Source of the DNA: Rebecca billardiae RCC1528
Taxonomy: Eukaryota; Protista; Haptophyta
Reading direction: 5' to 3'
NCBI GenBank assembly: GCA_965240325.2
Contig: OZ251238.1
Coordinates: 434,001-498,000 of the forward strand
DNA: 64,000 nucleotides
The notes under the pieces are model-generated. The model made no database searches. It was given only the letters and a program-made list of their open reading frames with translations, and was not told the origin of the DNA. Both the position numbers and the translations under genes were made by a program. Positions 15,943 to 54,683 of the stretch are shown in pieces (the stretch's first letter is position 1; every line of letters starts with the position of its first letter).

Positions 15943-17519
15943 GGCGGGCCGTAGCCCCCCACGGCCAGGCGGTAGTGCCCGGGAAAAAGATAAGAAAAAG
16001 AAAAGAAAACAGAGACGAATAATCGCCTCGCAAAGAAAAGAAAATCGCCTCGCTCACCAAAGAAATAAATCACTACGGGCGCCCTCGCAGCGCTCTCCCA
16101 CTGGGGACGCTCGGCCGAAAAAGGGTTCCTGGATGGCGCGGAGCGCATGGGCGGCGCGCGCCAAATCCAACGCCGGCGCGGACATCGCGCGGGGATTCCC
16201 GAAGGGTGTTTTCGCCCGATTCGCGATTGCTGTCCTCGTCGTCTCGCGTGCAGGTCGAACGAGGGCCAAAGCCTCAACGCGTCTGGAGGTACGCTCGGCG
16301 CGTCGCCACGGTCGTGCGATTTGGGACGGTCCTCGCCCGACTTGCACGTCGAGCGCTCGCACGGGCCATAGCATCATCAAGCGCTGCGCACAACAGCCAC
16401 CTCGCGCGATCCACCGCCGCGCGTCGGGCTCGGTGCGGAAAGGCCCTCATGACGAGGTGTCTCGCGGGCGGGAGCGCCATCGCACGCGACGCAAGATTTG
16501 GCGCGGCCTTCCGGGGAACTCGATCGCCGGAATCCGCGCACCGGACTGTCTGTCGCGGTCCCTCAGCCGAAGCCCACGTCCGGCCTGCATGGCGTCGACG
16601 GTGACCAATGCGACGGAAGCGCAGCGCCAACGGCGTACGACGCGCAGCGGACGCACCTCCCGGGTCTGTCGCCAAGGCAGCAGCCGCGTCTTTGCGAATT
16701 GGCGACCCTCGCCGCAGCGTGACACAGAAAAGCCCGTGATGCCATCCGCAGAGAGATGAAACGTCGAGCATGCAACATCGCCGCGCCATCCTCGTCCATG
16801 GCGCAGGCGCTGCGGGACGAGGCGGAAGTCGTCACGCCGGTGACGGATGCGCTGCGATTCGTGTGCCCGCGTGAGCAGCTCGTGCCCACTCTCGATCGCG
16901 AGTGGCACACGCTGTCGCTGTGCGCGCGCGCGCGCACAACCAACAGCTCCTCGTGCCGCCGAACACGCGAGCGCCAGACCTGTCAAAGAGGCGAAGAGCG
17001 ACGACCGCGTGAACGTCAACGCGCTCGTGCTCAGCCTGGTGGCCGTGTACGATGTCAACGCGACCTGCGCCGAGCCCATCATGCCCGGAGCGGACATCGG
17101 CAAGCGTCCTCGCGACGACCGCTCTCGGCTGGCGGCAGGAGGACATGCACACGATCTACTCTGGCGGCTTCGTCGGTGGCGAGGCGCTCGATTACGCCAT
17201 CGCGGTCGAGATGCGGCACATACAGCGCGTACCCGCGCTCGCGCGGAGCAACGGGCTACCCACCCCGCCCCGCGTGCTGCACATTCCCTCGTGGGTGTGG
17301 GCCTCGCAGCTCGCTGATGCGCACGAACGCGTTGGCTGGCGTACCCGGCGGCCGCGTACCGCACCGCGTGGGAGAACTTCATCACAGGTGTCACTGCTCC
17401 GACTACTGTCCGTCACCCGGCCACGAGCGAATGCTGTGGATCGGAAAGACGCGAACCCGCAGAGGATACATTGCGACAGCACTGGCACGGCCCGCCGACC
17501 CCCCCGCCCGCCAGGGCAC
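15943..17519 (+). mobile_element. Putative non-autonomous element with asymmetric inverted repeat and terminal hairpins (subfamily C)
   Basis: 5' end T|GGCGGGCCGT (15943-15952), partly foldable with ACGGCC just downstream; inverse ACGGCCCGCC at 17487-17496; then short stem GCCC-GCCA-GGGC and end ...GGGCAC|A. Both flanks are AT-rich. Confidence 0.5.
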
Positions 17520-17548
17520 AGTTTATATTATAGCTACAACGACGGTCG

Positions 17549-20500
17549 TCAAGCTTCGGTTATTCCCGCAGTGGTGAGGCTGGAGCCCACGGCCGCGGGC
17601 AGCAGCACCGCGTGCAGCTGCGACGCCAGGCTGGGGTACTCCTCGAGCAGCTCGTTCGCAGTCTCCGCCGCGCTGTGCACCTCCTCGTGCGCGATGCGCA
17701 GCTGCTCGCGCAGCTCCTCCTCCGACTCGGCAGGGCCACCGCCCTGCAGCGCAGCCTGAAGCGTCTCGATCACCTGCGCGCGCGCCGCGCACCGCCAGGC
17801 CGCCGGAGCGCAAGGAGGGTGCGAGTGAGCCAGAGCGCGCCGACAAGGACGCGGGCGCGAGGGCGAGCGAAGGGCCGCGCGCGCGCGCGCACCCGCTGGT
17901 TCTTCTGCGCCTCGGTCTCGTGGAACGCGCGCTCGATCTCCTGCGTCTGGATCGTCTGCGAGCGCGCGGCGCGCGCGTGCGCGCGCGCGTGCGTCGCGTG
18001 AGGCTCGCGGCGCGATCGCGCGGCCGCGAATCGGCCACGCGGCGGCGCTCGCGACCGCGCGCGGCGGCGCACCGTGTACAGGCTCTCCTCCTGCGCGAGC
18101 GTCTCGCGCCTCCGCTCCTGCAGCGTGCCCAGCTCGTCCGCCACCGCCGTCTGCTGCTCGCGCAGCTTCTGCACGTTGACGAGCGTGAGGTTGGCGTCGT
18201 GCGTGGTCGACTTGAGCTTGCGCGAGAGGTCAGCGATCGTCTTCTTGAGCGACGCCTGCGTCTCGCCCGACTTGCGCAGGGTGGCGGTCTTGCCCTTCGC
18301 CTCGATGTTGTCGCGCTTGTAGATCGCGCGCTCCATCTCGGCGAGCATCATCTCCTCGCGCTTCTTGAGCTGCGAGTACTTGAGCTTCATCCGGTGGATC
18401 TCCTTCTGCATCGCCTTGACCTCGGTCGCGCCCACCTCGGGGTCGAGCGCCGCCTGCGTCTCTCGCTCGAGCGAGATCTTCTTCTCCCACAGCATCATCT
18501 CGCGCTCGGACTCGGCGACCTCGGTGAGCAGCCGCTCCTTCTCCTCCTTCAGCGCCACCACCTGCGCCTCCATCGCGAGCGACTCCTGCTCCATGTCCGC
18601 CAGCCTGTGCACGAAGCTCTGCTCGAGCTGGTGGTTGTCGTTGGCGAGCGACTCCTTGAGGCCGCGGTGCTTTGCGATCAGCGCGTTGATCTTGGTCATG
18701 TCGTTGTGCATCGAGTCCATCGCGCGCTGCAGCTCGCGCAGCTCGCGGTTCTGCGTGTCGAACTGCGCGTCGATCTTCAGCCGCTTCTGGTTCAGGATCG
18801 TCAGCCGCGCCTTCAGCTCGAGGATGCTCTCCGACTTGGCGGCGTTGTCGTTCTCGAGCCCGACGAGGGACGTCTGGCCGTGGATCCACTGCCGCTGCAT
18901 CTCGTCCGACTCCTTCGACTTGGTGGCGAGCTCGGCCTGGAGCTCGCGGATGGTGGCCTCGAGCGGGCCCACCGCCTCCTCCTCCTCCTGCTGCGCCTTC
19001 GCCTTGTCCAGCCCCGCCTTCTCCTTCATCGCGTCGAGCTTGCGGTTGAGCTGCGAGACGTGCAGCTCCTTCTTCTCAATCTCGTCGTTGCGCCGCCGGA
19101 TCTCCTGCTCGTACTTCTGGATCAGCGTGTCCTTCGACTTGAGCTCGGAGGTCATCGCGTCGAGGCGCGTGCGGAGCACGCCGTTCGACGCGGTGGTGTT
19201 CAGCGTGTCCACGCGGATCCGCGCCAGATCGTTCTCCAGGCTCGCCGCCGCCATCTCCTTCTCGGCGATCGCCGCCTGCCGCCGCTCGACCGAGAGCTTG
19301 AGGTTCTGCGCTGACTTGTCGAGCGCGGTCTGCTCCGAGATCGTGTTGAGCTTCTCGTCCTCGAGCCGGCGGATCTCCTGCGCGACGCGCTGGATCTTGG
19401 CCTCCACCGCCGCCACCTCGTCCGACGCCTGCTGCTGCGCCACCTGCGCCTTCGCCAGCTCCGCGTCCGTCTGGTCGAGCGCGCGCTTGCACATGGCGAA
19501 CTTTTCGTTGAGCTTCTTGTGCTTCTCCGTGTTGGCGTCGATGATGCGCTCCGCCTCCTGCTTGTCGGCAAGCACGCGGCGGTGGCGGTCGGTGAGCGTC
19601 TCGTGCTCGTCCTGCGCCTTGGAGAGCGCCTTGCGGATCCCCTGCATCTCCGAGTCGAGCGCCGCGTCCTGCTCGTTCAGCTTGCGGATCGCGTCGACGG
19701 TCGCCTGCAGCGCCTCGTCACGCCGCTGCATGCCGATCAGCGCCGAGCGCCACTGGTTGAGCAGCTGCTTCTTCTCAAACTGGATCTGCTCCATCTCGGC
19801 GTTGGCGTCGCCGAGCGTCGAGCCCGCCGCGCGGGTCTCCTCCTTCTGCGCCAGCAGCTGCGCCTCGTACAGCTGGTACTTGTCGTGCAGCCCGCGCAGC
19901 TGCTCGTTGAGCCGGTCGATCAGCAGGTCCTGCCGCTTCTTCGAGTTCTCGAGCTTGTTGATGTCCTCCTCCGCCTTGTACGTCGCGCGGCGCGTGATCG
20001 CGATCTCGCCCTTCATGTCCTCGGTGTACTTCTCCACCTCGACGAGCGTCATGTTCAGCTTGTCCAGCTCCAGCTGGTACTTGTCCGCCTTGCCCCGGTG
20101 CGACTTGACGTCCTTGAGCGACTCGGCGTGCTGCGCGCGCACGCGCGCGAGGTCGTCGTCCGCCTTCTCGCGCATCTGCGAGATCAGGTTGTGGTTCTCG
20201 TGCGTCTTCTCGAGGTGCATCTGCAGCTTCGCGAGCGACTGCTGCACCTGGTACAGCTCCACGCCCAGGTCCTCGCGCTCCTTGCGCGCCTGCTTCAGCT
20301 CTTCGGCCTGCGCGCGGGCGAGCGCGGCGCGACCGCGCGCAGCGCGAGCGTAACCGCATGCCGTCGCGTCGCGTCGCGTCGCGTCGCGTCAGCCGGCGAG
20401 GCGCGCGAGGCCGGCGGGCGCGAGGCGCGCGCGGGCAGGGGAGGAGCGCGTGGTGGAGCCGCGGACCGCAACGCGAGCCGCGCCACGACGCGCCAGCACG

Positions 20501-25048: not shown

Positions 25049-25320
25049 CGAGCCAGTGGCACAGCAAGCCGGCTCGTTGAGCATCGCCGCGTCCGTGAGA
25101 GGTGGAGCACGCCGTGCCGGCCGCGGGCGCGGGACGGGCCGCGCGGCCAACGCAACGGGCGGCCTCATTGGAGCCCTCGTCAGACCGACAGACCGGTCAC
25201 GGTGAGACGACCTGACAGTGTCAGTGACACCCGGTATGGACTATGGTACGGGCTTGAATTTCGTATCGTCATCAGATGCCGCCAGCATATATAAGCAGCA
25301 GCGCCAGCCGACGTATATTA

Positions 25321-25323
<3 letters not shown>

Positions 25324-25372: not shown

Positions 25373-25380
<8 letters not shown>

Positions 25381-26237
25381 CCTTGACCTTGCGTACGCAA
25401 CCAACTGCCTGGATGCGGCAGGCGCATACTTACATAACACAGACACTCCTTGGGATTTTCTAGTTGTCGTGGAATACGTTGCAGCCCACCGCAGGCTGCA
25501 GTGGGGCACAACGGGCAGCGACCAAAAGCAGGCGGGAGCGCGAGATCGTCGTCGCGAGCACTTGGCACGAGGGCAGCTGCTGCGAAACCGAGCACGCAGC
25601 TGACAGCTGGCCAGAGGGCTTGGGAGAGGGAATCTGGCAGCTGGCTTGCCCGAGCAGCGTGCGCGTGTCACCGAGATCGAATCTGCGGTAACTTGGATGA
25701 GCCTCCTTGATGAGCGGACACGGCTGGCATACTGCAGCTTTGTCACCGTCCAATAAGCATAGAAGATGAATACGACCGCTGCCGGCCATTTGTACTCCAG
25801 GTACCCCCATCAATGTATGATCGACCGGCTGTAGATGAGAAAGCCAATCGATGAGCTGGAATATTGCTGGGCGACCGAGTTCGTCGTCATTGATGCATCA
25901 TAGAGGCGTGTATGATGCTTATTATGGCGGGAATGGTGAGCGCGCTTGTGGTGGTTGCTCCGCCAGAACGATGAATCGTTTGTATCTGCCGTGCTGTAGT
26001 CGAGCAGGTGTAGCGCGCTTCACCAGCGGTCGAGGCCGGCTCAGCTGGAGGCGCGGGGTGCCGAGGCAAGGGGCTGCAGCAAGCGGGCGACGGTGCGTCG
26101 AGGTCGATAATAGCCAATTGGATCGTGGCCCTGAAGCTTAGTACGACGCAGCGGGCAGGGCAAAGTCGATCGGCGGGTAGTATGGCCACGTACTTCTCGC
26201 CAGCGGACACAATCGATTATTGTGCCAATAACACCAC
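25373..26237 (+). mobile_element. Non-autonomous asymmetric-IR/3'-hairpin element (subfamily A, monomer)
   Basis: 5' GTGTCC (25377-25382); 3' GGACAC (26205-26210), AATCG, stem TTATTG-TGC-CAATAA, end ACCAC|AT. Same layout as the 44507-46123 units; AT-rich flanks; no credible ORF. Confidence 0.7.
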
Positions 26238-31800: not shown

Positions 31801-32256
31801 AGCCCGCGCCGCGCCGCGGCGTGGCGCCGCACGGCGCCGGCACGACCCCTTCTGACTCGACACTGACGCCGTCACGGCAGCGAGGTGGCCCCTGGGCCTG
31901 GCACGCACTCCCTGCAGTCACGGCAGTGTTCAATAACGCACGTGTACTCATTCAATGAGTACACGACGCATCGTCACCTACGAATCAGCCGCATCGTCAC
32001 CATCGTGTGACCGCGACCAGTCGACGACGCCATCGCGGAAGCGCCCGACGAGCCGTGACGAACTGCGTCTGCCGATAGAATCCTCGATCATCCAGTGATG
32101 ATGAGCAGACCAGTCATCCACCGACTACAGTAGTCGACTACCGAGGCCACCCGGCGAAAGAGGAAAACGTAGCAACCGACCCATCCGACCTCAAAGGTAT
32201 TGACACCGCGGTCGGCAGTGCCGCTTTTCGTCGTCACGGCTCGTCGGGCGCCCGCG

Positions 32257-32772
32257 ATGGCGTCGTCGACTGCTGGTCGCGGTCACACGATGGTGACCAT
32301 GCGGCTTGAGCACTTGGTGGAGCTACTGCAGGAGCGCGACGATGAACGGCGCGGCGAGCTAGCCGTGGCGCTCGCTGAGCGTGACCACGCGCGCGCGCGC
32401 CTCGCGGGCGCCACGATCTACGACCCGGTGCGGGACAGGGACCGCGGCACCATTGCGGCAAACACGGCGCTCAACGTCGACGCGGAGCGAGCTAACCACG
32501 CGAAGCGCATGGGCATGCTCGAGCACTGGAAGCAACAGCTCGCCTCCGCAGACGAGGAGCAGCGCGTGCTCGCCGCGCGCACGGATCATAAGCTCGGCCT
32601 GTACCCGCTGCATCCTCAATCCAAGCAGCCGCCTGGCCCCGCTGGCAAGCCCCCTGAGCACAGGCCAGCCTCCGACTCGCGCTCATCCACGCCTCCCCGG
32701 CGGACCTCGGACTCGCGCAGAGGATCGAACAGCTCGGGACACGCAGTGAACACAGGGCACGCCTCCAGCTGA
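32257..32772 (+). CDS. Hypothetical coiled-coil protein (about 171 aa)
   Basis: ATG-started ORF with helical heptads (LEHLVELLQERDDE; LEHWKQQLASADEEQ), bounded by AT-rich spacers. Confidence 0.5.
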   Translation: MASSTAGRGHTMVTMRLEHLVELLQERDDERRGELAVALAERDHARARLAGATIYDPVRDRDRGTIAANTALNVDAERANHAKRMGMLEHWKQQLASADEEQRVLAARTDHKLGLYPLHPQSKQPPGPAGKPPEHRPASDSRSSTPPRRTSDSRRGSNSSGHAVNTGHASS

Positions 32773-34861: not shown

Positions 34862-34981
34862 GCTACATCATCGGCGACGGCTCGGCGGTGACAGACAGGT
34901 CACAGAATCAGATGGCGGGCGTCAATCTCGCCTGCCTGAGCTGTGTGCGTCTCTTCTTATCTGAGTATTGAACTGTAAACT
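34862..34981 (-). repeat. Solo TA|CAGTTTAC repeat end (degenerate)
   Basis: TGGCGGGCGTCAATCTCGCCTGCCTGAGCTGTGTGCGTCTCTT is identical to the core of the 39460 copy. Confidence 0.8.
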
Positions 34982-34989
34982 CTACGGCC

Positions 34990-37900
34990 CTTGGTTCGTC
35001 TGTAACTACTGTTACTACCGTGAACTCGCGCTCCTCACTCTCAGGGAGGTGTGCGGCTCGCGTGTCGAGCACATCATGGATACGTACTCCAATTGGCTGT
35101 CTCGGCGGAAGCGCAGCAGCCGGACTGCCCGGCTCAACGCCATCCTCGACATGACTGTGGGTGCCACGATCGTGATGGCAGCGCCCAGGGCTGGCCCCAA
35201 CCTGCCGGGCCATGCCCACACGAGCATGCTGGAGGAGAGCATCCTGCATGATGGTGGGACCTCCGCCGCGCGGATGATACGCGCCACCAATGGGGGAGCC
35301 GCAGCAGCTGTCCTCTCCCTCTTCACAGCGGACGGCAGGAGGGCCCTCCGTGCATACGACCCCGCGCAGGAGTGGATGTGCGGTCGCCTGGCCCATGCCT
35401 TGCTGGATGGGCTCGTTGACAACTGGCTCACCGCCCCGGAAAACTTTCTGCTCACCGGGCACCTGGGCCCTGCGGACCGGGCTGCGGCCCACGAACGCGA
35501 AATCCCTACTGATGGCAGGCTGCCAGTGCGCGGCCTGCTGGCTGACACAGACAGGCTGATGGCCGGAGTGGATGGCTCCTACGTCCCAGGCAGGGGCCAG
35601 GGGGCAGCTGCTGTGGCATATGCGCTACCCCTCACACCGGGCGGCGAGCGCCATGCCATCACCATCTTCACAGCCACGTACCCCGGCGAGCAGTCAGCCC
35701 AGAACTCTGAGATTGCCGCTGCCACCCTGGGAGTGAAGGTGCTCTCTACTATTGGAGTGCGGCACGCCCACATAGGGTGGGACTGCGATACTGCCCTGCA
35801 CCACACCCTCCGCGCCCGACCGGACTTGACAGCCCCGGGAGAGTCTGTTCCCCGCCAGGGCACTGGCACCGCAGCCAAACTCCTCTCTGGCAGCCCCCAC
35901 ATGGTGCGCCTCCTCCGGCTCCTGGACATCTGTGTCCCACCGGCGTCGGGTCACCAGTGGGCGTTTCGCCACCAACAGGCAGGCCATGCGGAACTGGACC
36001 GCCTGGTTGGCAACACCCTGGCCCCACGGTGGTCGGCCCTCGACAACGCCTTCTGTGTGAGCTCGGCCCAATGTGAAGCGTTGCTGCGCATAGTGCTCGG
36101 ACATGCCCCTGGCACCCCACGCGACGCTGCGCTCCGTACGGTCTGCAACCTGTGTGCGGATTGGGCCAGCAAGCAGGTCGCCAGGGGTGACCGGCAGGCA
36201 TCGTTCGCACTGGGGCCGATGGTCTGGCTGCCGTACAGAGTGTCACTGATGGAGCACGGCTCTGCCACGTTGCTACCGTCCTGCCCAAACCAGGTCCGCA
36301 CCCGCGTCATGGACAGGGCGCGCAGGGCTGCGCTGGAGGCACATGCTGCCACGCCTGCTGCAGCAGCGAAGTACAGGCTCAAACTGGCTGGACCCGACAG
36401 TGACCAGGAACCCGACCACCAGGGCGGTGCCCCGCTCCCATGCGATGTCCGCGAGTCCACACACTCGCTTCAGAACCAGTGGTGCCGCGAGCGCATCAGT
36501 AAGTTTGTGCTGCGCTGCGCGGTCGGTGCACTGGTTTACAATGCGGATGCTGTGGCAGCCACACCGGCCCTGGCTGGTGTCCGGCGACGGTGCACCAGCT
36601 CGCAGGCGACCTATGCCCTGGGCACAGAGTGCCTATTCTGCCTGAAGGCGGGGGACCCGAACCCAGGGCCGGATAGCGTGCACCACGTCTTCCATCAGTG
36701 CCCGCACGCACACGCGCAGCGGAAAGCTGAGGACAGGGTGGGAGCTGCGATACGTAAGGCCTCGAATGGCGCCATCCCACAGCCCGAAGCCACCCGACTC
36801 GCGGTCCAGGCGACGCTTCACCCCTTCTACTATGCTGGCAAGGTGACCGGGGCCACTGTCACAGCTGTGAAGCAAGCACTGGCTGCCCACCAGCCGCCTG
36901 GCGGCCAGCCGGTGCAGTACGCCACTGGGATGATCCACAAGCCCTTGGCCCTGGCCGCCAGCAAAATCCACGACGAGCGCAGGGCGCTGAGCCTCAGCTC
37001 GGCGTATGCCAAGACGTACGACTTGGATAAGTACTGGGCCCTCCTCCATAAGCAAGGCCAGGCGGCTGCCAGCCAGGCGGAGCCCGCCCCTGCTGCTGAG
37101 GTGGCAGAGCCAGGCCCACCTGCTGAAGACTCGCCAGCCCCCAATGAGCTGCTGCAACAGCAGCCGGCCGCAGCTGCCCCACCGGCTACAGGTGCCCCCG
37201 CCAGCGATGCGCAGGCGCCCGCTGCGTTGGGGCCTGGCCTTGCTCCAGCAGCGGCGAGCCACCCCCTGCCTGCACAGCTGCTGGGCCCGGTGCCGGAGGG
37301 CGCCGCAGCTGAGCCGCCAGCAGCAGCGCACGCTGGCCTGGCTGGCGCGGCGATGCACGGCGCACAGCGTGGCAGCAGGCGGCGGCCCCGCTCGCCCGAT
37401 GCAGACGCCCTGGCACGCCAGGATGAAAACGGTGCGAGTGGGCCCCCTGCCCAGCAGCGGCGGTTGGCAGCAGCAGCAGGCTCCACCCCTCGCACTGCGG
37501 GCCCCCCAAGCTACGATGTGGCTGCCGGCCACTCTCAACACCCTGCACACCGGCGGCCAGCAGTGCTGCTGCCACCTATGCCTGCCTACGCTGCTGTCCA
37601 GCCGCAGTGGCGCGGGGCGGCCACTGAGCTGCTGGCAGCAGCGGGGCATGCTGTGTACCCTACGTGCATGCATGGGGACTGCCTCCTGCTGGCAGCCATG
37701 GGCTATGTCGAGGAGCGTGCCGCCGCAGTGGGCCCCTGCACCGCCGCCTACCAGGCAGTCCGCTTCCTCAGGGCAGCTGCTGTGGACTGGGTGCTCGGCA
37801 CGGCACGTCTCTCACGGACTCACCGGCTCCAACTGGGGCTCGTGGATGCGGATGGACTGGAGGCCATCAGCATGTCAGACAGCTATAGGGCCACGTACCA

Positions 37901-39250
37901 TGGGCAGGGCGCCCAGCCAACCCTGCAAGAGTTCGCCGCGCCGCTCAGGGCTGCCGCACGATACGGGGCCGATGGCAGGCTCGCCGCCGGTGGGGCGTCG
38001 AGGTACTGGCCCACGGTCATGATACCAGCGGTTGCTGCCGTCATGGGGCGTGACATCGCCGTGTTCCAGCCGCGCGCCAGCCAGGCTGCCCCTGCTGGTG
38101 GGACAGCAGGCAGGCCCGAGAGCTCTGATGCAGTCGGGCACCTGGTGGCGTGCACGCTGTATAGGCACGTGCCGCGGTGGTCCAGCATGAACAACCCAGT
38201 GTATACGGACCCCCAACGCTGGCAACACCCGCAGGGGGAGCCTGCAGGAGCTCCAGTGGGCCCGCGCCAGCAACAGTCGGTACGCGAACGCCTCCTTGCG
38301 CGTGACCCAACTCTTGCAGCAGTGTACTTTGATGGCACCGGGCACTACGAGCCTGTGCTGCCGCTGCCGAGCCGACCGGGGCTCAAGGACAGGGAGAGCT
38401 GCCCCACAAGCAACCGGCGCGGCAAACAGCCCAGGGACCGGCCAGACGACTGCCCTGAAGACCATGGCACAGGTGCTGGTGATGGGCAGCGGCGGTTGCC
38501 GGACAGCTCTGCGCTGCCTCCGCCCAGCACCGCGGCAGGCACCGGTAAGCGCCCTATGCACAGGGCCTGCACAGGCAGCCCCCAGTCACCGGTGGCACTC
38601 GCCCCCCCGCTTGGACACCCCCGGGGGTGTAGCCAAGGAGGTGCCAGCAGCAGCGCCGGCGCTCAAGCACCACCCGTCGCGCCGCGTGGCGACCCCCCTG
38701 CGGTGGGGCGTGGCCCGCCGGCCAAACGGAGCCGCCCGGATTCCGATACCCTGAAGCAGCCTCTCTGGCCTGGCGCCCCCTCTCCTGACCAGCCCAGACC
38801 CCCGACGCCTGCGGGGCCGGACGCCCCGCCCCTACGCAAGTCTGCCAGGCTGTGCCAGAGCCGCACGCGCGGCGCAGGCATGACTGCAGCTCCACACCAG
38901 CACAACGACGCTTCGCGCGCACCCGGCGCGCCGACACAGCCTGCCCGGGAGAAGCCAGCAGGGGCTGACCTTGGGCAGCAGCCATACATGCAGGCCAGCA
39001 TGAGCGGTGGGGTGGCATCAGTGCCGGCCCCGGCCCGCAAACGCAAACAGCCGGACGCCCCGGCCCACACAGCTGATGCGCCAGCAAACCCTGCTCCGGG
39101 CCACAGAACCCTGCCGCCGGCTTTGAGGCCGACTCGCCACACTGGGGCACATATCACCTGAGGGCCAGGCCTTCTGTGTGATGAGCTACCCCAGTCATGC
39201 CGCTTGATACACACCTTCCCCAACCGACAGTGGGGCTCTACATTCCCTAC
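34990..39250 (+). mobile_element. 5'-truncated non-LTR retrotransposon; open frame to 39161 with RNase H, CCHC finger and OTU-like domain; RT absent
   Basis: RNase H acidic residues in VDGS, NSEI, WDCD and CADW; CLFC-x10-HHVFHQC; OTU-like HGDCLL...DGTGHYEPV. Visibly less CG-rich than host genes and intronless; boundaries approximate. Confidence 0.75.
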
Positions 39251-39308
39251 TACATCCTCATTCTGTCGGCGCGCTGTCGCATCGGCGCCCAGTCGGCGAG
39301 TTCGGACG

Positions 39309-39518
39309 ACGACGTTTTGTGGACGACGGTGGGGCGAGGACGACGGGCGCTGGCGTGCCGCGAGGCGGCCGCAGCCCTCATCCAGGCCTCGCAGGCGGAC
39401 GGCTGAACGAATTTTTCCGGCGGCGCTACCATCGGCGACGGCTTCATGGGCGGTGACAGTTGGCGGGCGTCAATCTCGCCTGCCTGAGCTGTGTGCGTCT
39501 CTTATTCTTAGTAAACTG
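39309..39518 (-). repeat. Solo TA|CAGTTTAC repeat end, about 210 bp (best-preserved copy)
   Basis: Reverse complement closely matches 52349-52580 and ends ...GTAAACTG|TA. Confidence 0.85.
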
Positions 39519-43622: not shown

Positions 43623-44506
43623 CGTATACTCGGAGTGGCGGCAGTCGGTGCGGCTGTAGGCGGGCCGTGTAGCCGCATTATTTATCGTCATTGATAATAA
43701 ATGTAGATATATTTATTAATAGTTTCGAGTTAATACAATATATATTATATAAATGTTGAGCTGACGCAGCCTGGGGCGCGCATCTCAGCAGATGGCGTCG
43801 CCGCTGGGACGTCAGGGCCGGCGCCGCACCAGGCGGGCCGGCGGCATCAGCTACGGAGCAGTGGCTGGCTCTGGCGGCGCGCGCGCGCGGCGCGCGCGGC
43901 GGCAGGAGCGCGAGCGCAGCAGCGCTGGCGCGGAGCGACGTGGACGCGGAGCGCGGACGCGGCAGTGCGGACGCGGGGCGACACGGGCGCGGAGCGTGCG
44001 CGGGCGGTACTGCCCGGCGCAGCGCGGCACGGATGGCACGCCGGCGGCACAGGCGGGCGCCATCGTGGGAGAGTCCAAGGAACAACGGACTCGTTCACTT
44101 CATTCATGGACGCCCGGACTCTCAGTTTTGAGAATCGAGAGTCCGGGATCATGGGTCCGTGCGCAGGTTACCCAGGTCCGATGACATTACCGAGTACCTG
44201 GGGGAAAGATAAGCAGTTACGGCGGTGCGTCGGGAACACCTGTGATTGGTTGACGCACGGGGCGTGCGGCTCGGAATCATTGAGATTCCCCGAGCCGGGC
44301 CAGCAAACGCCGGGTCACCCCGCCGGAGCCGAAAAGAGCTCGGCGGGAGGTTAGCTTCGCTCGTCCGAAGAGCGAGAGTCGAGATTGCCTTCGTGGGCGT
44401 CACCGACGACGCGCCCGACTGGACGTGCCGGTGAGCTTTTAGCAGGGCTCGAGACGCTCGGAGCTCGCGTTTACCCAATAATAAATACGTATATTGATTA
44501 TAATAT

Positions 44507-46123
44507 GTGGCGTTATAGCGCAGCTATAACCGAGTGTGTCCGGAGGCTAGAAGGAGGCGATGCAGGCGTGCCGCTTGCCGACCAATTGGGCTTAATCCAT
44601 CATCTGCCGCGATTGCCGCGCCGATGCCGATGGCGATTGCGTGATCCTGCAGGTAGTGACTGCTGGTACCCAATGGTGCCGGCTGCTCACGTTTTCCGAG
44701 TGATTGCTGCTCCACCATCTCGACCGACCCTTCAACAGACAACACCAGGGAGTATGTTTGACAAGATCTTTACTATCATCGTGATGTGCTATTATTACAT
44801 TCTTCATCACCACTCATGGCAGCACCTCCTTTATGGCCTCCTGTCCAACTCTTCTATACGGCTCGCTCGTGTAGTCTATTTATTTGGCGGCTCTCGAGAT
44901 AGCATGTGCTGATGAGATTGATCTCTTGGGAGCTTCTCCATCAGCATCCAGGCAGCTTCTCATTCGTCAAGCAAGCGGCCAGCCCCAAGCTCATTATCGT
45001 TGTGGCCGCTTCTAGTAACTACGACCTGCTATCGAGCCGAGCCACTTGGGCATCCTCGGGCCCCCTGCTCATCCGCGCAGCAAAGCACAAAGAGGATCCA
45101 TCGCCTCCCGTCGTGCTTCTTTGCGCGAACATGCAATCGCTGTGGCACCGTCGGCTCAGTCGCTCTTCCTGTTCAGCCCGGAACAAATCCCAACCTCGAG
45201 TATACATCATCGGCATATCTATAGGCGATGCTACTTGGAGACAGCTTCGCTCTTCATGCAGGAGGACACGTGGCGTTATAGCGCAGCTATAACCGAGTGT
45301 GTCCGGAGGCTAGAAGGAGGCGATGCAGGCGTGCCGCTTGCGACCAAGGGCTTAATCCATCATCTGCCGCGATTGCGTGATCCTGCAGGTGGTGACTGCT
45401 GGTACCCAATGGTGCCGGCTGCTCACGTTTTCCGAGTGATTGCTGCTCCACCATCTCGACCGACCCTTCAACAGACAACACCAGGGAGTATGTTTGACAA
45501 GATCTTTACTATCATCGTGATGTGCTATTATTACATTCTTCATCACCACTCATGGCAGCACCTCCTTTATGGCCTCCTGTCCAACTCTTCTATACGGCTC
45601 GCTCGTGTAGTCTATTTATTTGGCGGCTCTCGAGATAGCATGTGCTGATGAGATTGATCTCTTGGGAGCTTCTCCATCAGCATCCAGGCAGCTTCTCATT
45701 CGTCAAGCAAGCGGCCAGCCCCAAGCTCATTATCGTTGTGGCCGCTTCTATAGTAACTACGACCTGCTATCGAGCCGAGCCACTTGGGCATCCTCGGGCC
45801 CCCTGCTCATCCGCGCAGCAAAGCACAAAGAGGATCCATCGCCTCCCGTCGTGCTTCTTTGCGCGAAACCCACCATCCGCCCCTGCAGCCTCCGTATCTC
45901 ACTCTCAGTTGTCTGAGCTTGTCAGGGACCTGCAGTCTGTGCTGCGCTCGCCTGAGCCAGGGACCTTGCCACCACATTCAATCGCTGTGGCACCGGCGGC
46001 TCAGTCGCTCTTCCCGTTCAGCCCGGAAGTGGCGGAACAAATCCCAACCTCGAGTATACATCATCGGCATATCTATAGGCGATGCTACTTGGAGACAGCT
46101 TCGCTCTTCATGCAGGAGGACAC
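44507..46123 (-). mobile_element. Head-to-tail dimer of an asymmetric-IR/3'-hairpin element (subfamily A); units 44507-45269 and 45270-46123
   Basis: Near-identical units joined GGACAC|GTGGCG with no spacer. Each has stem GTTATAGC-GCA-GCTATAAC 5 nt from one end, then GTGTCC, whose inverse GGACAC is the other terminus. Flanks are ATAT|...|ATAT. Confidence 0.8.
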
Positions 46124-47625
46124 ATATGTATATATATATATATATTATACTGCTGCGTAGCGCAGCATCCGTCATCACTCATCAGACCCGGTCATCCACG
46201 TCATCGTCGTCGTTCAGATTGCGACTACGACCATTGTAATAAACATATATGACCGCGTTCCGCGGTCCTTCCGTAGAACCAACGTAGTTAGGGGCCCGCG
46301 GTGCACTCTCCGTCGGCATATGCTGTCCGTCCAACGTGCGGCCGTAGCGGCAGCAGCAGCGCGGAGCGCCGTCGAGCACGCGCGGCAAACGAATAATGGA
46401 ATATTATGCAGCGCGGGCGAGTCGACGGTCTGGAAAATGCGCGATCACGCCACAGCAGGCTGGCAGAGCCCGCCCCGAGCTGCAGCATGCGCCGTAGGTG
46501 CTGCCCCAAGCTCTCGACTGCCCGTAAGCGGCGGCATGTGCGGCGGCGCCGGCGGCGGCCATGCTGCCCCGCCGTTGCGCGCCGCGGGGCGCTGCCAGCA
46601 CCTCCGTGGTGAAGCGCACAGCGCTCGAGCCCACAGGGGCTGGCGACCGTCAAACCGACACCCCATGACACGGGCCGGGGCTGCGTGTGCCAGCTGCACG
46701 CACCCCCTGGGCCCACCTGGCCCGCTCGAGCAGCTCGCGCCTTGGGTGCGCACAGCGGCTCGAGTATACTGGTATGGACTATGGGACGCCTGCTAGTGCT
46801 GCGGTGCCGCCGAGCGAGCACGTGCGGCCGAGGGTCACGCAGCACGGGCGACTCGACGGCGGCGAGCAGGCGCGACGGCCTCGCCGCGCCACGGTAGAGC
46901 CTGCCCGGGCTGCAGCACGCCATAGGAGTAGCCCAGCGCCCTCCTCCGCCCTCCAGCTTCGGCGCGCGCAGCAGGCCCGGCGGCGGACATGCTGGCGTGC
47001 CCAAGCAAGCAGGCAGATGGGCGCTGCCGGCCGCGCCGTCGCAAAGCGCGCAGAACTCGAGCTCGGGGGGGCGGACGGCCGCCAAACTGGCGCCGCAGGA
47101 CGTGGCACTGCGTGCGCCAGCTGCGCGCACCCGCTGCGCCCGCGTAGCCCGTGCGAGCGCCGCGCCTCGAGCACACGCCGCAGCAGCTCGACACAGCCAC
47201 TGCAGTGCCACGCCGTGGCCCGTCGGCATCTTGGAAGCCGCCGAGAGCGTGTGCTTTCCCCGCACGACGGCGGTAGCTGCCGCGATGTATACGAGCGTGC
47301 TGCCGCGCCGGCCGCCGCTGCCCGGCCGCTGCGCCGGCTTCCACTCCGCGCCCGCTGCGCGTCCGCAGCTGGCAGCTGCGCCCGCCGTCAGCCGGCCCGG
47401 TGGCCAGCTGCCGCGCTCGCTGGGCGACCACTCGATGATGCGCGCAGCGTAAAGTGCGCGCTGGGCACCTCCTCGTCGCGTGCAATTTCGAGGTAGTCCT
47501 GCATCTGCTCCTGCATCAGCCCCTCCCACCCTGCGCGCGGGCGCGGACGGAGTCGCACGCACGCGGTCCGATCGACGATCGATCGAGGCGCGGGCCGCGG
47601 CGGGACGGGCGTCGACGCGCAGGTT

Positions 47626-48084
47626 AGTTAGGTATGGTGCCGGCGCTTCCCGCAGGCGTTGCGCGCTTGGGGCGAGTGGGGCGCGTGGGCGAGACCAGCG
47701 GCCAGCCAGCCCACGCCACCGGCGCGAGGGCACCGGCGCGGCGCGCACACACACTTTGGGCCGCGGACCTGGTCGCGGAGTTAGGTATGGTGCCGGCGCT
47801 TCCCGCAGGCGTTGCGCGCTTGGGGCGAGTGGGGCGCGTGGGCGAGACCAGCGGCCAGCCAGCCCACGCCACCGGCGCGAGGGCACCGGCGCGGCGCGCA
47901 CACACACTTTGGGCCGCGGACCTGGTCGCGGAGTTAGGTATGGTGCCGGCGCTTCCCGCAGGCGTTGCGCGCTTGGGGCGAGTGGGGCGCGTGGGCGAGA
48001 CCAGCGGCCAGCCAGCCCACGCCACCGGCGCGAGGGCACCGGCGCGGCGCGCACACACACTTTGGGCCGCGGACCTGGTCGCGG
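47626..48084. repeat. Three tandem, apparently identical 153-bp units
   Basis: Units start at 47626, 47779 and 47932 with AGTTAGGTATGGTGCC. Confidence 0.95.
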
Positions 48085-48316
48085 GGCCGCCGCGCGGCTG
48101 CGTGACCGGCAGCTGTGAGTGAGCTGATCGAGTGAGCAAGCCGAATGCGCGTCCGGAGGTACCTGCAGGCGCGCTCGGGGAGGGCCGAGGGCGATAGGTC
48201 GAGACCAGCGGCCGGCCGGCACCCGTCGCGCACGCACTCGGTGCGCGCCTTTGAAGGCGGCATCCTCGCTCGGGCCGATGTCGTCGCGCCGCTCGCGAGC
48301 ACGAGACAGCTGACAG

Positions 48317-48589
48317 GCGGGTAACTTGGTTGTGACAAGCGCTATATTCAAAAGAATATCTTTCAATATTATCAAGGCGGTTCATCCATCGAGGCAAGCG
48401 GGTAACTGGCTTTAAATAGCGCTATTCAAAAGAATCTCTTCAATATGATGAGGAGGTTCATCCAACGAGACAGGTGGGTAACTTGGTTTAAAATCGCCAT
48501 TCAAAAGAATCTCTTTCAATACCATGAGGCGGTTCATCCATCGAGACATGCGGGTAACTTCTTTTCGCAAGCGCTATTCAAAAGAATCT
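48317..48589. repeat. About 3.5 diverged AT-rich tandem units of 76-81 bp
   Basis: GGGTAACT...ATTCAAAAGAAT...GGTTCATCCA units start at 48317, 48398, 48474 and 48550. Confidence 0.9.
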
Positions 48590-49114
48590 GGCCTCATAGC
48601 TGTTTTCGACCCAAAACAATCAAACGTCGCTCGGCAAACTCGTACTCCAGCATACAAGAAGGACAAAAATACTCACTTGTTTCACCCCCGGGGTATCTGA
48701 TCCCACGTCCGTCCATAGTAGATACAAGAATTGCAGCGGGCGCGGCCTTTTAAGCTGTGATGGACAGCATACCCCCCCTCAAAAAGTCGAAAACTCACCC
48801 TCCAACAGCCCTCAAAATCGTCCCCCATGCCCTTTTCTTTGATCAAAAGATCTTTTTGACAACGTAGTGAGGGCCCCCGGCGGGGGCTCCACGCTACGCG
48901 CTCCGCCCTGCACCGCGGGCCATGACGACGATGATGAGCGCGGTAGCTTTACGTATAGTATACGACACACCGCCACCAGCTGCTGACGATGATGCCTGAT
49001 GGCCGGCATGGCCGCCGCCGGCGCCGCCCTTGCGTCGTCATTGCGCGCGGGCTGCGCGCGTCCGGGCAGCACCGGGCGCGGCCGGCGCGCTGCTGTCGCG
49101 ACGACGCTCACCCT

Positions 49115-50938
49115 TCAGCCGGCGAAGGACAGGTGTGCGAAGCCGTCCTGGCCACGGGCAAGGTCACCTGCCGTGAGCTCGCCGTCTGGCCCACTCGGCG
49201 ACTTGGCGGGTGCCAATGATGACGACGACGCTTTGCCATCCGAGGACGACTCGAGACTGTGCTCGCCACCACCGTGATCGCCCCCGCGCCTGTGCCGCCC
49301 GCGCCTGCCCGCGCCCTCGGCATGCCGCCCTGCACGGTTGCGGTGCGTGCGCGTAGCCTCTGTGGGAGGGGCCTGCGCGCCGACCGGCCGCACACTGGCA
49401 TCGCTGCCGTTTGGGCTGGCGCCCAGCGCGGGCGAGCTGAAGAGGGCGTCGCTTGCGCCGGCCAGCTGAGACAGCCATGCGGGCGGCTGCGGGAGCGGGA
49501 GATGTGCCCCGCCCGGCTTGAGCACCTCCTTGCACGCCTCGCTCGACGCCCACTCGCGCCTGCCGAGGACGGCGAGTCGATGGAGCTGCTGCCACGCGCA
49601 CGAGACGAAGCGCGCCAGGGCCCGCACGTCCGCCGACGGCGCCCAGCCCTCGTGCAGCTGCACCGCGACGCCTTGCAGCGCGCGCTGTAGGGGGCACGCA
49701 GCGCCGCTCGCCGTGTTGTACCCGCTCGGCCTGTCCAGCGCCGAGCGGTACCGCACCACCTCCTCGTCCGGGGAGCCGCGCAGCACGAGCGGCGGCACCC
49801 CGCCCGCGAGCACGGCGGAGGTGGCGTTCCAAAGCGCTTCCTCGGACGAGTCCTGGAGACTGAGCAGCACGTCCACGATCAGGTCGGACGCGCCGCGGTG
49901 CGCGGGCTGCACGAAGGTGCCGCCGCGCGTCGAGACCTGCGCGATCGGCTCGAGGCCGGCGTGCCCGCTCGTGCCCGGCCGACGCACGCACAGGTCGGCC
50001 GAGAGGTTGGGCACCAGCAGGATGTCCGCGGGCGAGTCGACCTGGCCCACAAAGACGCCCGCGACGTGGAGCCGGCGCGGGCCCGACCAGAGCAGCTGCA
50101 GCTCGTGACGGACATCCGCGAGCGCGAACGGGAGGACCAGCTGGTCCGGCTGCCCGCACCGTCGCGCGCGCCGCGTGCGCGCGTCCTCGCCCGGAGGCGG
50201 GCCGGGCCGCTCCCCGTCGGGCGTCTCGGCCGCCCCCAGCTCGAGCCGGCGGCGCTGGGCAATGGGGATGCGCACGGGCACGCCGAACATGGCCGTACTG
50301 CGGAGCGCGCCCGCGACGTCGACGTCGATTGGATCGGCCATGCGGTTCGCCGCGATGTTGAACACCTCGCCCAGCGCGTCTGCGTCGACCACGTGCACGC
50401 GCACGTCCAGGCCGACCTCGTGCGCGCCGGGCCGAATGTCAAAAGCTGGGATGCTCACCCGCGCGGCCGGGCGCGCGAGTGCCCGCGTGGGCGAGCTCGG
50501 CAGCGCGACGCTCACCGTCGTCGGATCCACAGCCAGCGCGAACGCCGATGGCGACTCGAGCCTCACGCGCACGTCTATCCGCACCTGCTCCTCGCATAGG
50601 CTCGTGCTGTTGAGCTGCACCACACGCACGTGCAGGCACTCGGCCAGCTGCATGTACGACAGCGCAACGGCGAGCAGATACGCAAGCAACGCCGCGATGA
50701 GCGCGCAGCACGCGCATGCACCCATGAGGCGACATTTGCGATTGCCGCGGTCGCAGCGGAACGGTTCGGCCCGCAGCTCGTCCAGCATCTCAGCCAGCGA
50801 GCGCATGCCCGCTGCTGACGCGGCATGGCCGTGCGCGTCCTGCTGCGTGTCGGCCGGGCTCTGTTCTATCAGCACGGCGGCGTGCTTGGACGCAGCACTT
50901 TCGTGCTGCCTGACGGCGGCGATGCCAGCCCACGACAT
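49115..50938 (-). CDS. Membrane-anchored LEA_2/WHy-like beta-sandwich protein
   Basis: Single TM (CCALIAALLAYLLAVAL) followed by alternating beta pattern VRIDVRVRLESPS.FALAV...IPAFDIRPG; first in-frame ATG at 50938. Confidence 0.6.
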   Translation of the reverse strand: MSWAGIAAVRQHESAASKHAAVLIEQSPADTQQDAHGHAASAAGMRSLAEMLDELRAEPFRCDRGNRKCRLMGACACCALIAALLAYLLAVALSYMQLAECLHVRVVQLNSTSLCEEQVRIDVRVRLESPSAFALAVDPTTVSVALPSSPTRALARPAARVSIPAFDIRPGAHEVGLDVRVHVVDADALGEVFNIAANRMADPIDVDVAGALRSTAMFGVPVRIPIAQRRRLELGAAETPDGERPGPPPGEDARTRRARRCGQPDQLVLPFALADVRHELQLLWSGPRRLHVAGVFVGQVDSPADILLVPNLSADLCVRRPGTSGHAGLEPIAQVSTRGGTFVQPAHRGASDLIVDVLLSLQDSSEEALWNATSAVLAGGVPPLVLRGSPDEEVVRYRSALDRPSGYNTASGAACPLQRALQGVAVQLHEGWAPSADVRALARFVSCAWQQLHRLAVLGRREWASSEACKEVLKPGGAHLPLPQPPAWLSQLAGASDALFSSPALGASPNGSDASVRPVGAQAPPTEATRTHRNRAGRHAEGAGRRGRHRRGGDHGGGEHSLESSSDGKASSSSLAPAKSPSGPDGELTAGDLARGQDGFAHLSFAG

Positions 50939-51154
50939 TGACCACGGCGAGTACTCACTGGCGCGGTCCGTGGGCACGACGCGTCATGCCGATCCACCGC
51001 GTTTGCAGCCGGCGGCCGCTGGGCGGCGGAGCAGTGACGGACTCATCAGTCCGGAAAGCCAGCTCAGCCGCTCAGGTCCGGCGAGTCCGGCGCGTTGATC
51101 AGGCATCAACTCCGGGGACGTCGACTGTGCTTGCGAGTGGAGGCGGTGACGACG

Positions 51155-51514
51155 ATGAGGCTCCTCTCGCTGCTGCTCGCGGCCTTCGCGGCGTGCGCTT
51201 CGGCGGCGTCAGCGGACGTGGCATTCGTCGCACCGCGTGCGGTTGGTCTCGTCCAGCGCAGTCCCGCCTGCTCGACCGTGGCTGGTGTCGAGATGCGCGG
51301 CGCGGTGAAGAGCACAAAGCTCAAGGGCGCCAAGGTGAGGTCGGCGGTCGCAAAGCGCATGAAGGTGACTGCGGGCGGCAAGATCCTGCGCCGGAAGGCG
51401 AACAAGCAGCACCTGCTGTCGAGCAAGCCGCACAAGAACAAGAAGGCCGCGTCCAAGATTGGCAAGGTCTCCGACGCCATGCTCAAGAACTACCTGCAGA
51501 TCCTGCAGCCGTAA
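51155..51514 (+). CDS. rpl35: Plastid ribosomal protein bL35 with bipartite presequence
   Basis: Signal peptide + AFVAP, then KVRSAVAKRMKVTAGGKILRRKANKQHLLSSK (L35 signature). Confidence 0.92.
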   Translation: MRLLSLLLAAFAACASAASADVAFVAPRAVGLVQRSPACSTVAGVEMRGAVKSTKLKGAKVRSAVAKRMKVTAGGKILRRKANKQHLLSSKPHKNKKAASKIGKVSDAMLKNYLQILQP

Positions 51515-52329
51515 TTACGCCTGCGCCAGATGACTGCAAGGAGGTGAAGGCAGCGCGGGCTCGCGGGAATCCTCGTCCAGCCAGCGCACGCCTCTCGCAC
51601 GCGCGCGCAGGATCGCGATGAGACGCAACCGCATGCTCTCCGGCGCTCTGGTTCTGCACACGCAGGCTGTCTGCGCCAGCGCGGCTGAGACGGCAAGCTG
51701 GTGTGGGGGATCGGCAGCTCGGGTGCAGCGCGCTTGCGCTGGTGCTACGCGATGGCATGACTTGTCGGGGGGCTGGTTCCAGGTGGACGGGCAAGCGCTC
51801 GGACCGCGGGCACGTGTTGCCGGCTGCTCTGGTTCGGCTACCCCGACGACAGTGCCCGTGACCAGTGCCTTCCAACGAGCGCGATGTGCTCAGTGACCGC
51901 GGTGTAATACTGTAGTCACTGTACTAATGCGTTCGGTCCGACACTCTCCGACCGGTCGCGCGGGCGCTGGAACAGCGGCACCATCAGCGCCAGCATCGGC
52001 CATAGTCTATATATATATATTCAATGATGTGTCATGTTAGATCAGTGATGCTGTTCGGTAACTTTAATATTGAACATGATATTTATTAATTATTTTGATA
52101 CATCTGACGCTCGGTGACCTCCGGTCCGCAGCTCCGAGCTCGGCGGGCCACTCACTCTAGTAGTAGTATTACTAATTACTGATCACGGCTGGACTCATGT
52201 AAGTCAGCACTCATCTAATAATTCCATATGCCCGTGCTGATATTAGCCTAATTCAGAGGTCAGGCCGCAGGCGGGGACCAATGCGGACCCGCATATTCCG
52301 GATGAAGATTGAAGAATGAAGATCACGTA

Positions 52330-52580
52330 CAGTTGACTACTCAGTTGTCAGTTTACTAAGAATAAGAGACGCACACTGCACTCTGCAGCTCAGGCAGGCG
52401 AGATCAGTGACGCCCGCCAACCGTGTAATCACCGCCCATGAACTGAAGCCGTCGCCGATGGTAGCGCCGCCGGAAAAATTCGTTCAGCCGTCCGCCTGCG
52501 AGGCCTGGATGAGGGCTGCGGCCGCCTCGCGGCGCGCCAGCGCCCGTCGTCCTCGCCCCACCGTCGTCCGCAAAACGTCG
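52330..52580 (+). repeat. Solo TA|CAGTTTAC repeat end with small insertions
   Basis: Matches the reverse complement of 39309-39518 and stops about 20 bp before the element at 52601. Confidence 0.85.
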
Positions 52581-52600
52581 TATGAGTATTACTCTCATAT

Positions 52601-54683
52601 GACCGCGTTCCGCGGTCTTTTTCCGTAGAACGAACGTAGTTCGGGGCCCGCGGCGCACCCTCCGTCGGCTGCTGTCTCAGTCTGACATGTGTAACAGTTC
52701 GCCTGAGCTGCCACCGCCAACTCAGTCACTGCCGCCCACCGGGCCGGCGGGCCGAGGACTGTCGCCGCGGGTCCGCGGGCCGCCGCGGGGACTAGCGGCC
52801 GGCGCGCGCGCGCAGGCAGGGCGAGAGGCGCTGGCGCGGCGCGAGCCGGCGCGTGCGCGCGAGCGGGCGCACCTGCTTGAGGTACTCGCCCTGCGCCATG
52901 CGCTCGACGACGGGCCGCTGGTCGCTCGTGCCGGCAGAGCGAGAGCGCGCGCCACTGCTGGCCCCGGCCTGCCGGCTGCGCAGCCTCGCACCGAGACCGA
53001 CCGAGCGGAGCTCGGGGCGGTGGAACGAGGCGAGCGGCGCGTCGCGCCTGCCGCCGCGCGTGCGCGCCTGCTCCACCGCGCCGCCGTGCTCGCCCGCCGC
53101 CTCCTCCGCCGCGTCGGCCTCGAAGACGGCGGCTGCCAGCGGCAGGCTGAGCCGCGCGCCGGCTCACTCACACTGTGAGTCACACCCGCGGTCGCCTCGA
53201 CGGCCAACTATCCACAGCTGCTCGAGCTGCTGGAGGGCGCCGCGACGATGGCGGCGCGGGCGCCCAGCGCGTCCGTTGCCGCGTCGCTCAGCTCGTCGAG
53301 CTCGGCGCCGCACTTCGCCAGCTTGGCGCCTAGCGCCTCCGCGTGTCACGTGCTTAATCGTGCACGTCAGCCTGCTGATACGCCGCCGCCCATCGGCACT
53401 TCTGGCATCTGCGCGCGCAGCTGCTGCAGCTCGACGGCGGAGTCGTCGCGGCTGGCGGCGAGGGTGCGCACCGCGTCGATTGCCGAGGCCTGCAGCCCGG
53501 TGATCGCCGCGTCGACGCGCGCGGCGATTTCCCCACGCAGCCTCCTCGCGCCACGTGGCCGCCGCTCGCGTGGCAGGCAGCTGGGCGCCGCTGCGCGACC
53601 CGGAACCGGCGCGCGTTTCACGGATGCTCCTGCTCGTCCTCACGCTGCTGCACCTCCGCGCCGCCGTCGACCGAGTTGAGGAGGAGCTCGCGCTCGGCGT
53701 CGAGGCGCGAGCTCGCGTGCTCGAGCTCTGCGCGGGCAGAGCTGATGAGCCGGATGCGCCCGGCGGGCGCATCCGGCTCATCAGCTCTGCCGCGCTGCCC
53801 GCTCGCTCGCAGCGGCGCGCTCTGCTCCGGGCCGCCGTCGACTGAGTTGAGGAGGAGCTCGGGCTCGGCGTCGAGGCGCGAGCTCGCGTGCTCGAGCTCG
53901 CCCTTCAGCCGCGCGAGCTCCGGGCGCATCCGGCTCATCAGCTCTGCCGCGCCGCTCGCTCGGCGGCGGCGGGCGGCGCGCTCTGCTCCGGTCGGCGAGC
54001 GACGAGCTCGCGTGCTCCGGACTCGGCTCGCCCTTGCGCGCTGCTCCTCGAGTGACGAACGCGCCCGCGGGCAGGTTGTTGCCCGTCGCCCCCGCCGCGA
54101 TCTCGCCGCCCCCGCCGCGATCTCGTCGCGCATGTGTCCGTGGCGCGCGCCTGCGAGGTGACAGGCGGGCCGCGAGCTCAGCCTCGGGGAGAGCGGAGCG
54201 AGGAGAGGGCGAGACGCGCGGCCTGCGAGGCGACAGGCGCGCTCGGGGAGAGCATTTTACCATTCACATTTACAAGTGATCAAGTTTCCCGTGCGCCTGC
54301 GAGGCGACAGGCGCGCTCGGGGAGAGCATTTTACTATTCACATTTACAAGTGATCAAGTTTCCCGAGCCCTTGCCTTGCCGTTTTTATCGGTTGGCGGTT
54401 GGCGGCAATCTCATACTTAAAATCGCGCTCGTAACGAACCGTTACACTAATGTCACGTCCAGCTGACGTCCAGATCGCACTTTACTTAAGGGAATCAGCT
54501 GGACGCGCTTATTTTCGGCCTAATAGACCTCTCTATGCGATCTCAAAAACTCGAAACTCGGTCTCCGCCAGCCCTAAAAATCGCCCCCCGTCCCTTTTTT
54601 CTTGATCAAAGATCTTTTTGAAACGTGGTTCGGGCCCGCTGGTGCGGGCTCCACGCTGCGCGCTCCGCCCTGCACCGCGGGCC
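52601..54683 (-). mobile_element. Non-autonomous asymmetric-IR/terminal-hairpin element (subfamily B, copy 2) with scrambled coding-like cargo
   Basis: Same terminal stem (52601-52617); GGCCCGCGGCGCA (52645-52657) vs terminus 54671-54683 (12/13). About 65 bp and 135 bp of end homology to copy 1, interior unrelated; internal 74-bp-period duplication at 54221-54364. Confidence 0.8.

Follow-up and report, generated by a model that had tools for sequence, protein, structure and literature searches.

In a 64,000-nucleotide (nt) stretch of the genome of the haptophyte Rebecca billardiae RCC1528 (contig OZ251238.1, positions 434,001 to 498,000; hereafter the window, with positions counted from its first letter), we found four blocks of DNA that probably make up two families of non-autonomous Helitron2-type (HLE2) rolling-circle transposons. 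The first family comprises elements A (46251-48921) and B (52601-54683), and the second one comprises elements E2 (25373-26237) and E3 (44507-46123). This is a new family of an already known kind, which adds detail to Helitron biology and no new principle. What makes A/B and E2/E3 convincing is that independent evidence fixes their ends: the homology between copies, a dimer junction, and an empty site.

A preliminary description of the window had proposed five insertions, including a further block, E1 (15943-17519). All the motifs it had located were found at their coordinates, and every one of the five blocks begins with a G preceded by T and finishes with a C followed by A. A, B, E2, and E3 stood as non-autonomous, non-coding elements, and only E1 was left with neither repetition nor polymorphism to support it. 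When the window was compared to itself by BLAST, the five blocks were only partly related to one another.

The window has about 68% GC, is gene-dense and eukaryotic, and its genes are mostly intronless, in keeping with a compact eukaryotic genome. It also contains AT-rich spacers with sharp edges and (TA)n tracts. The elements occupy short AT-rich intergenic spacers and lie no more than about 200-260 nt from gene ends; thus, their insertion could affect promoters or terminators. For comparison, we used public Logan contigs, which included the runs ERR14847148 and ERR14847151 from the same species, together with runs X1 and X2, the latter from a second organism.

Ends and interiors of the two families

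The preliminary description had used as evidence a design shared by three subfamilies. We scanned the window for this design in its bare form: a T, a 9-nt terminal motif, the inverse of this motif at 15-60 nt from the 3' end, a 6-base-pair (bp) hairpin at most 8 nt from the end, and an A. The window yielded 687 instances of it, and block shuffles 147-215. Since it is frequent in shuffled sequence, the design proves nothing by itself. The situation is different with fixed ends, where the probability that a terminal motif recurs in inverse 15-60 nt from the other end is about 3e-5 for at least 13 nt, 7e-4 for 10 nt, and 0.045 for 6 nt.

Element A lies on the minus strand, with its G...C core at 46251-48921 within a segment at 46249-48923; 2675 nt are absent from the empty allele, and the element is non-coding. 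Its left end is a 13-nt terminal repeat, GGCCCGCGGTGCA (48909-48921, minus strand), whose length has a chance of about 3e-5 at fixed ends. The inverse of this 13-mer forms the right repeat (46293-46305), 42 nt inside the 3' end, and is followed by a terminal hairpin, GACCGCG-GAA-CGCGGTC (46251-46267), with a 7-bp stem and a GAA loop, flush with the end of the core. Near the other end there is a second hairpin, GCCCCC/GGGGGC (48873-48887, minus strand).

Element B, also on the minus strand (core 52601-54683, segment 52599-54685), combines A-type ends with a different interior. Its 13-nt terminal repeat (54671-54683) reads GGCCCGCGGTGCA on the minus strand, as in A, and its right repeat (52645-52657) has one mismatch to the terminal 13-mer; across both elements, the inverse is found 42-44 nt from the other end. 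The terminal GAA-loop hairpin (52601-52617) has the same sequence in B as in A, and in B it is the minimum-energy fold. The second hairpin of B, GCCCGC/GCGGGC (54634-54649), covaries with that of A. A and B are homologous over 73 nt with 90% identity at one end and over 148 nt with 84% identity at the other, and neither self-BLAST of the window nor alignment found any shared sequence between these ends. Each interior contains a tandem array at the same relative position: 3.6 copies of a 76-nt unit in A (48312-48589, about 330 nt from the end), and 2.0 copies of a 74-nt unit in B (54221-54365). The two arrays had no mutual match in the self-BLAST of the window. On the minus strand, the 5' flank reads TCAT| for A and TAAT| for B, and the 3' flank starts with A in both.

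Other copies of this family were found in the comparison data. In run X2, A/B-family copies lose their similarity exactly at 46249 and 48923 and have other flanks. In run X1, all the contigs that cover positions 46307 and 46337 read C where the window reads T; B also has C at 46307, which is the one of these two positions that aligns cleanly between A and B. This pattern suggests that the X1 contigs come from paralogous copies and not from A itself. By contig depths, which are not a true measure of copy number, the copy number appears low.

The copies in run X2 were themselves flanked by pieces that look like the termini of E2/E3, TGTACCAATAACCCCAC on one side and GTGTCCTGCTGC on the other, with about 30 nt visible of each. 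This likeness suggests insertion into the E2/E3 family or chimeras with it.

In the second family, E2 (25373-26237, plus strand) is non-coding, and its 5' boundary is ambiguous within a GT run at 25373-25377. The motif GGACACA (26205-26211) is the inverse of TGTGTCC at the 5' end of the element (25376-25382). After it comes the hairpin TTATTG-TGC-CAATAA (26217-26231); this has a 6-bp stem and a TGC loop and ends 6 nt from the 3' end. E3 (44507-46123, minus strand) is a head-to-tail dimer of unit a (44507-45269, 763 nt) and unit b (45270-46123, 854 nt), which are 95% identical and meet at CCAC|GTGTCC, without any intervening base. Each unit presents GGACAC (44536-44541 and 45299-45304, minus strand), the inverse of its 5' GTGTCC, and the hairpin GTTATAGC-TGC-GCTATAAC (44512-44530 and 45275-45293, minus strand), with an 8-bp stem located 5 nt from the end.

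E2 and E3 have a homologous 47-nt 3' end that finishes in RCCAC. Its local alignment score was 25, compared to a mean of 7.1 (standard deviation 2.4) for random 60-mer pairs, and the stems around the TGC loop differ between the two elements by compensatory changes. A 346-nt contig of run X1 spans the dimer junction of E3, in a variant with a 177-nt deletion; thus, the dimer is not an assembly artefact. As the junction contains no AT, the unit of E3 runs from G to C without AT. Insertion at A|T with T...A ends was also considered for E3 and discarded, because the extra bases are absent from the dimer junction. The 3' junction of E2 was present in three Logan runs, with all contigs ending 25 nt inside the element.

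At the coding level, A, E2, and E3 lack codon periodicity and their open reading frames (ORFs) are compositional junk, those of A being rich in Arg and Ala; an ORF inside A had no match in the protein search. In B, one part (about 52660-54000) is codon-like in its periodicity, with internal duplications and a palindrome. Looking up the ORF records of 30 candidates in and around the elements returned matches for two flanking host genes only. The end motifs of A/B, when compared to metagenome and viral collections, gave nothing beyond chance matches of 20-40 nt.

The preliminary description had also placed the mobilising enzyme outside the window, and our results agree: none of the six frames of the window contains the helicase P-loop motif G..G.GK[ST], and none of the ten long window ORFs scanned with Pfam matched RepHel. 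The long ORFs that did have Pfam matches (a kinase, an ANF-receptor protein, a GMC oxidoreductase, and a Tudor protein) are host genes.

The empty site of A

A is a presence/absence polymorphism with precise ends within the same species. Contigs L016 (run ERR14847151) and L017 (run ERR14847148) match the window from 52376 to 48922 at 99.7-99.9% identity and then resume from 46248 to 46145. These contigs end on one side at 52376, inside the truncated 3' end of a retroelement to the left of B, and on the other at 46145, at the (TA)n tract that adjoins E3 on its right. To the left of E3, contig L021 ends at an AT-rich spacer at about 43685, some 820 nt before the element. The flanking gene at 49115-50938 is on record in Logan contigs, and CCDC39 and CLPTM1 were recognised on contigs of the comparison data.

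The empty allele reads ...GTAATAAACATAT|GACGACGATG..., with the junction in shorter form AAACATAT|GACGACG. The filled allele, that of the window, reads ...GTAATAAACATATAT, then the core GACC...GGGCC, and then ATGACGACGATG...; in shorter form, AAACATATAT, the core, and ATGACGACG. The indel of 2675 nt is 4 nt longer than the G...C core, with a leeway of 2 nt in its placement (46247-48921 to 46249-48923). Between the filled and the empty allele, the spacer on the left of A (46145-46248) has only about 81% identity, with a 9-nt indel and many substitutions, against 99.7-99.9% over the 3.4 kb on the right. The difference reflects either a haplotype of great age or a spacer that evolves fast.

Three readings of this site were weighed. 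The one we favour, and consider reasonably likely, is that the element has ATG...CAT ends and inserted without duplication, since it needs no extra event. A duplication of AT around the G...C core plus one slipped AT unit is possible but rather doubtful; such a slip is plausible given the strong divergence of the adjacent spacer between the alleles. The preliminary description had placed the elements between T and A and had proposed the empty site as the check on duplication. A was indeed cleanly absent from both runs, but insertion at T|A without duplication would need an additional slip of 4 nt, and we regard it as unlikely. A target duplication of 3 nt or more, or of any sequence but AT, is excluded by the empty site. 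A 4-bp duplication had also been tried for A and was rejected, as the element divides the AT units 6 + 2 and not 4 + 4.

The empty site and the exact dimer junction provide precise ends, which can be used for genome-wide annotation and to search for the transposase. Taken as Helitron2-type, these elements would document recent mobility of such transposons in a GC-rich marine alga. Little on Helitrons in haptophytes was found in the papers searched, and the genome paper of Diacronema lutheri is silent on them.

Mechanism, rival explanations, and block E1

We infer rolling-circle transposition because the layout of the elements matches the canonical HLE2 and the Helitron2/FoHeli descriptions. 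A RepHel transposase, an enzyme that combines Y2 HUH with a Pif1-type helicase, would be encoded elsewhere in the genome, act in trans, and nick the left end, and one strand would be peeled off until the right repeat and the hairpin stop the process. The two ends would then be joined into a single-stranded circle. Either read-through past the stop or the circle stage could give rise to the E3 dimer. Finally, the circle would be pasted into an AT-rich spacer without target duplication, or with AT at most.

Several observations weigh against the assignment to HLE2. The T|T target usual for HLE2 was not found, and A, B, E2, and E3 present AT at eight of eight ends; the single empty site fits both insertion without duplication and AT duplication with a slipped AT unit. 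With 6-7 nt, the inverted repeat of E2/E3 falls short of the 12-16 nt given for HLE2. The 60-nt ends mostly had folding energies no different from those of shuffles, so we discarded energy as evidence for the hairpins, which conservation and covariation support instead. A captured gene in B lacks support too, as its codon-like piece of 123 amino acids had no homologue among 1.84 billion representative proteins. Besides, no RepHel gene with matching ends was seen in a search that was limited to the window.

The AT that flanks the elements invites two other explanations. It stands at both ends of A, B, E2, and E3 and in the empty site, and the two termini of A/B have a weak ATGRCC(C)GCG similarity, as would be expected if these were cut-and-paste DDE transposons resembling miniature inverted-repeat transposable elements (MITEs) that duplicate a 2-bp AT target. 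We judge this very unlikely. Real symmetric terminal inverted repeats are absent: the strong repeat stands at the terminus on one side and 26-44 nt from it on the other. In addition, the filled allele of A contains one AT beyond what an AT duplication would give, and the dimer junction of E3 has none. An AT-specific 2-bp duplication is not known from any DDE superfamily, and the target of Tc1/mariner is TA. Alternatively, circles could be integrated by a tyrosine or serine recombinase, in a Crypton-like manner, through a 2-nt AT crossover core. This would account for the AT on either side of every well-supported copy and for the circular junction implied by the dimer. However, if a second circle had been integrated, AT should separate the units, whereas the junction is CCAC|GTGTCC, and no recombinase turned up in the window, though no scan aimed at recombinases was made. 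We find this explanation hardly credible.

Other explanations keep an HUH-type enzyme but dispense with RepHel. Replitrons have a short direct repeat at both termini, a hairpin at the right end, and a Y1 Rep, and putative proteins of this kind are reported from two haptophytes (PMC10288648). The elements could thus be non-autonomous Replitrons, or belong to another helicase-less Y1 HUH group, copied and pasted by a Rep that reads the hairpin and short repeats, and the CCGCGG near both termini of A/B can be read as a direct repeat. Nevertheless, the direct terminal repeat of Replitrons is absent in E2/E3, the hexamer of A/B, a palindrome, forms part of the inverted repeat, and an asymmetric inverted repeat followed by a hairpin is a hallmark of HLE2 and not of Replitrons, so this origin seems improbable to us. 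There is also a slim chance that A/B, with ATG...CAT ends and neither target preference nor duplication, and E2/E3, with G...C ends at AT|AT, are both moved by a non-standard HUH enzyme, such as a helicase-less Rep. If true, they would constitute an undescribed group of hairpin-guided eukaryotic transposons outside the Helitron2 lineage.

For block E1, we lean slightly towards ordinary intergenic or decayed genic DNA, with an inverted repeat that arose by chance. E1 (15943-17519) is non-coding and GC-rich and was kept as a candidate only. It has a 10-nt terminal/subterminal inverted repeat (15943-15952 and 17487-17496), and its 3' hairpin has a stem of only 4 bp. The bare design arises hundreds of times by chance, and the probability of 7e-4 for a repeat of at least 10 nt at fixed ends increases to an estimated 0.1-0.2 or so once blocks, strands, and offsets are considered. 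E1 has no second copy in the window by self-BLAST, its ORF had no homologues in the protein search, and its 3' junction was present in the three Logan runs, with contigs ending 20-25 nt inside. On the other side, both of its boundaries coincide with sharp transitions from AT to GC, it amounts to 1.6 kb of non-coding GC-rich DNA within an intergenic gap, and it can be read in the family layout on either strand; on the plus strand, it has TAAT| on its 5' side and A on its 3' side. E1 may be a third family, the one piece of evidence for which is its 10-nt repeat.

Neighbouring features and known systems

An element of about 4.6 kb (34909-39518) has an ORF of 1397 amino acids without any Pfam match at E <= 0.01. 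Two 5'-truncated copies of its 3' end, at 52349-52584 (about 236 nt) and 54811-54866 (about 56 nt), bracket B, and a third piece (69 nt) lies directly upstream of the long copy. As judged from these copies, its behaviour would be similar to that of long interspersed nuclear elements (LINEs). We considered whether B was nested in this retroelement and rejected it, since the homologies on its two flanks correspond to distinct 3' ends, each of them 5'-truncated. The AT-rich spacers around B also contain all the copies of the 9-mer AGTATTACT (52165-52173, 52585-52593, and 54687-54695), three occurrences against roughly none expected. Two of them are close to the ends of B, at 7 nt and 3 nt, and the copies are not positioned as a target duplication of this element.

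Other features of the window include a GC-rich non-coding block of about 725 nt (43756-44480) between AT-rich spacers, with long imperfect hairpins near 44110-44145 and 44260-44300, and a 75-nt inverted-repeat pair (31987-32306, 92% identical) around some 170 nt, with a MITE-like look. Short hairpins with CTGCTGC/GCAGCAG in them stand right beside (TA)n tracts at 15670-15730, 25285-25320, and 46150-46170, and may be a recurrent intergenic signal.

The preliminary description had not recognised the end and target rules of these elements. Both have precedents: the layout is that of published HLE2 elements (PMC11417382, PMC5148889), and the T|A site is published for FoHeli1/2 (PMC5148889). The canonical HLE2 layout consists of a short terminal repeat, a right repeat, and then a 3' stem-loop (PMC11417382), with the right repeat 20-40 nt inside the 3' end (PMC11417382, PMC5148889). 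In Helitron2 elements, the terminal inverted repeat is asymmetric, each terminus has a hairpin, and both joined ends and tandem copies occur (PMC5148889). Our elements resemble them in the terminal left repeat with its subterminal right copy (13 nt in A/B, 6-7 nt in E2/E3) and in the stem-loop that separates the right repeat from the 3' terminus in both families. They are also alike in having a hairpin near the other end, unrelated interiors, tandem head-to-tail copies, and no long target duplication. They differ in the AT on both flanks instead of T|T, in the short repeat of E2/E3, and in that no RepHel partner was seen in the window. The orientation of A/B is provisional, and reading them on the plus strand would give the layout called HLE2-reverse (PMC11417382).

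Among the known systems, FoHeli1/2 of Fusarium oxysporum and the Helitrons of Chaetomium globosum insert between 'TNAT' and 'A', and FoHeli1/2 carry a terminal hairpin with a GAA triloop (PMC5148889). A, B, and E1 (on the plus strand) match this 'TNAT'|'A' site. Our elements share with FoHeli1/2 the asymmetric inverted repeats, the GAA triloop, the position of the 3' repeat at 20-40 bp from the end, the joined ends, and the tandem copies. On the other hand, the sequences are unrelated, and FoHeli elements start with TC and end with ATTTT, whereas those described here start with G (or ATG) and end with C (or CAT). In addition, the GAA hairpin of FoHeli is at a 5' end defined by its ORFs, while the orientation of A/B is not anchored in this way.

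The resemblance to the remaining systems is more partial. With Helitron1, the elements have in common the 3' hairpin, the probable lack of target duplication, and the rolling-circle logic, but they present neither the 5' TC nor the 3' CTRR, they have inverted repeats that are absent from Helitron1, and an A|T split is incompatible with the dimer junction of E3. With Replitrons, they would share an HUH-type, non-DDE nature, a hairpin at one end, and the occurrence in algae; they differ in that E2/E3 have no direct terminal repeats (GTGTCC... vs. ...CCAC) and that A/B share only the palindrome CCGCGG. Finally, they are unlike DDE transposons in that their termini are not inverted copies of each other and the empty site shows no clean duplication.

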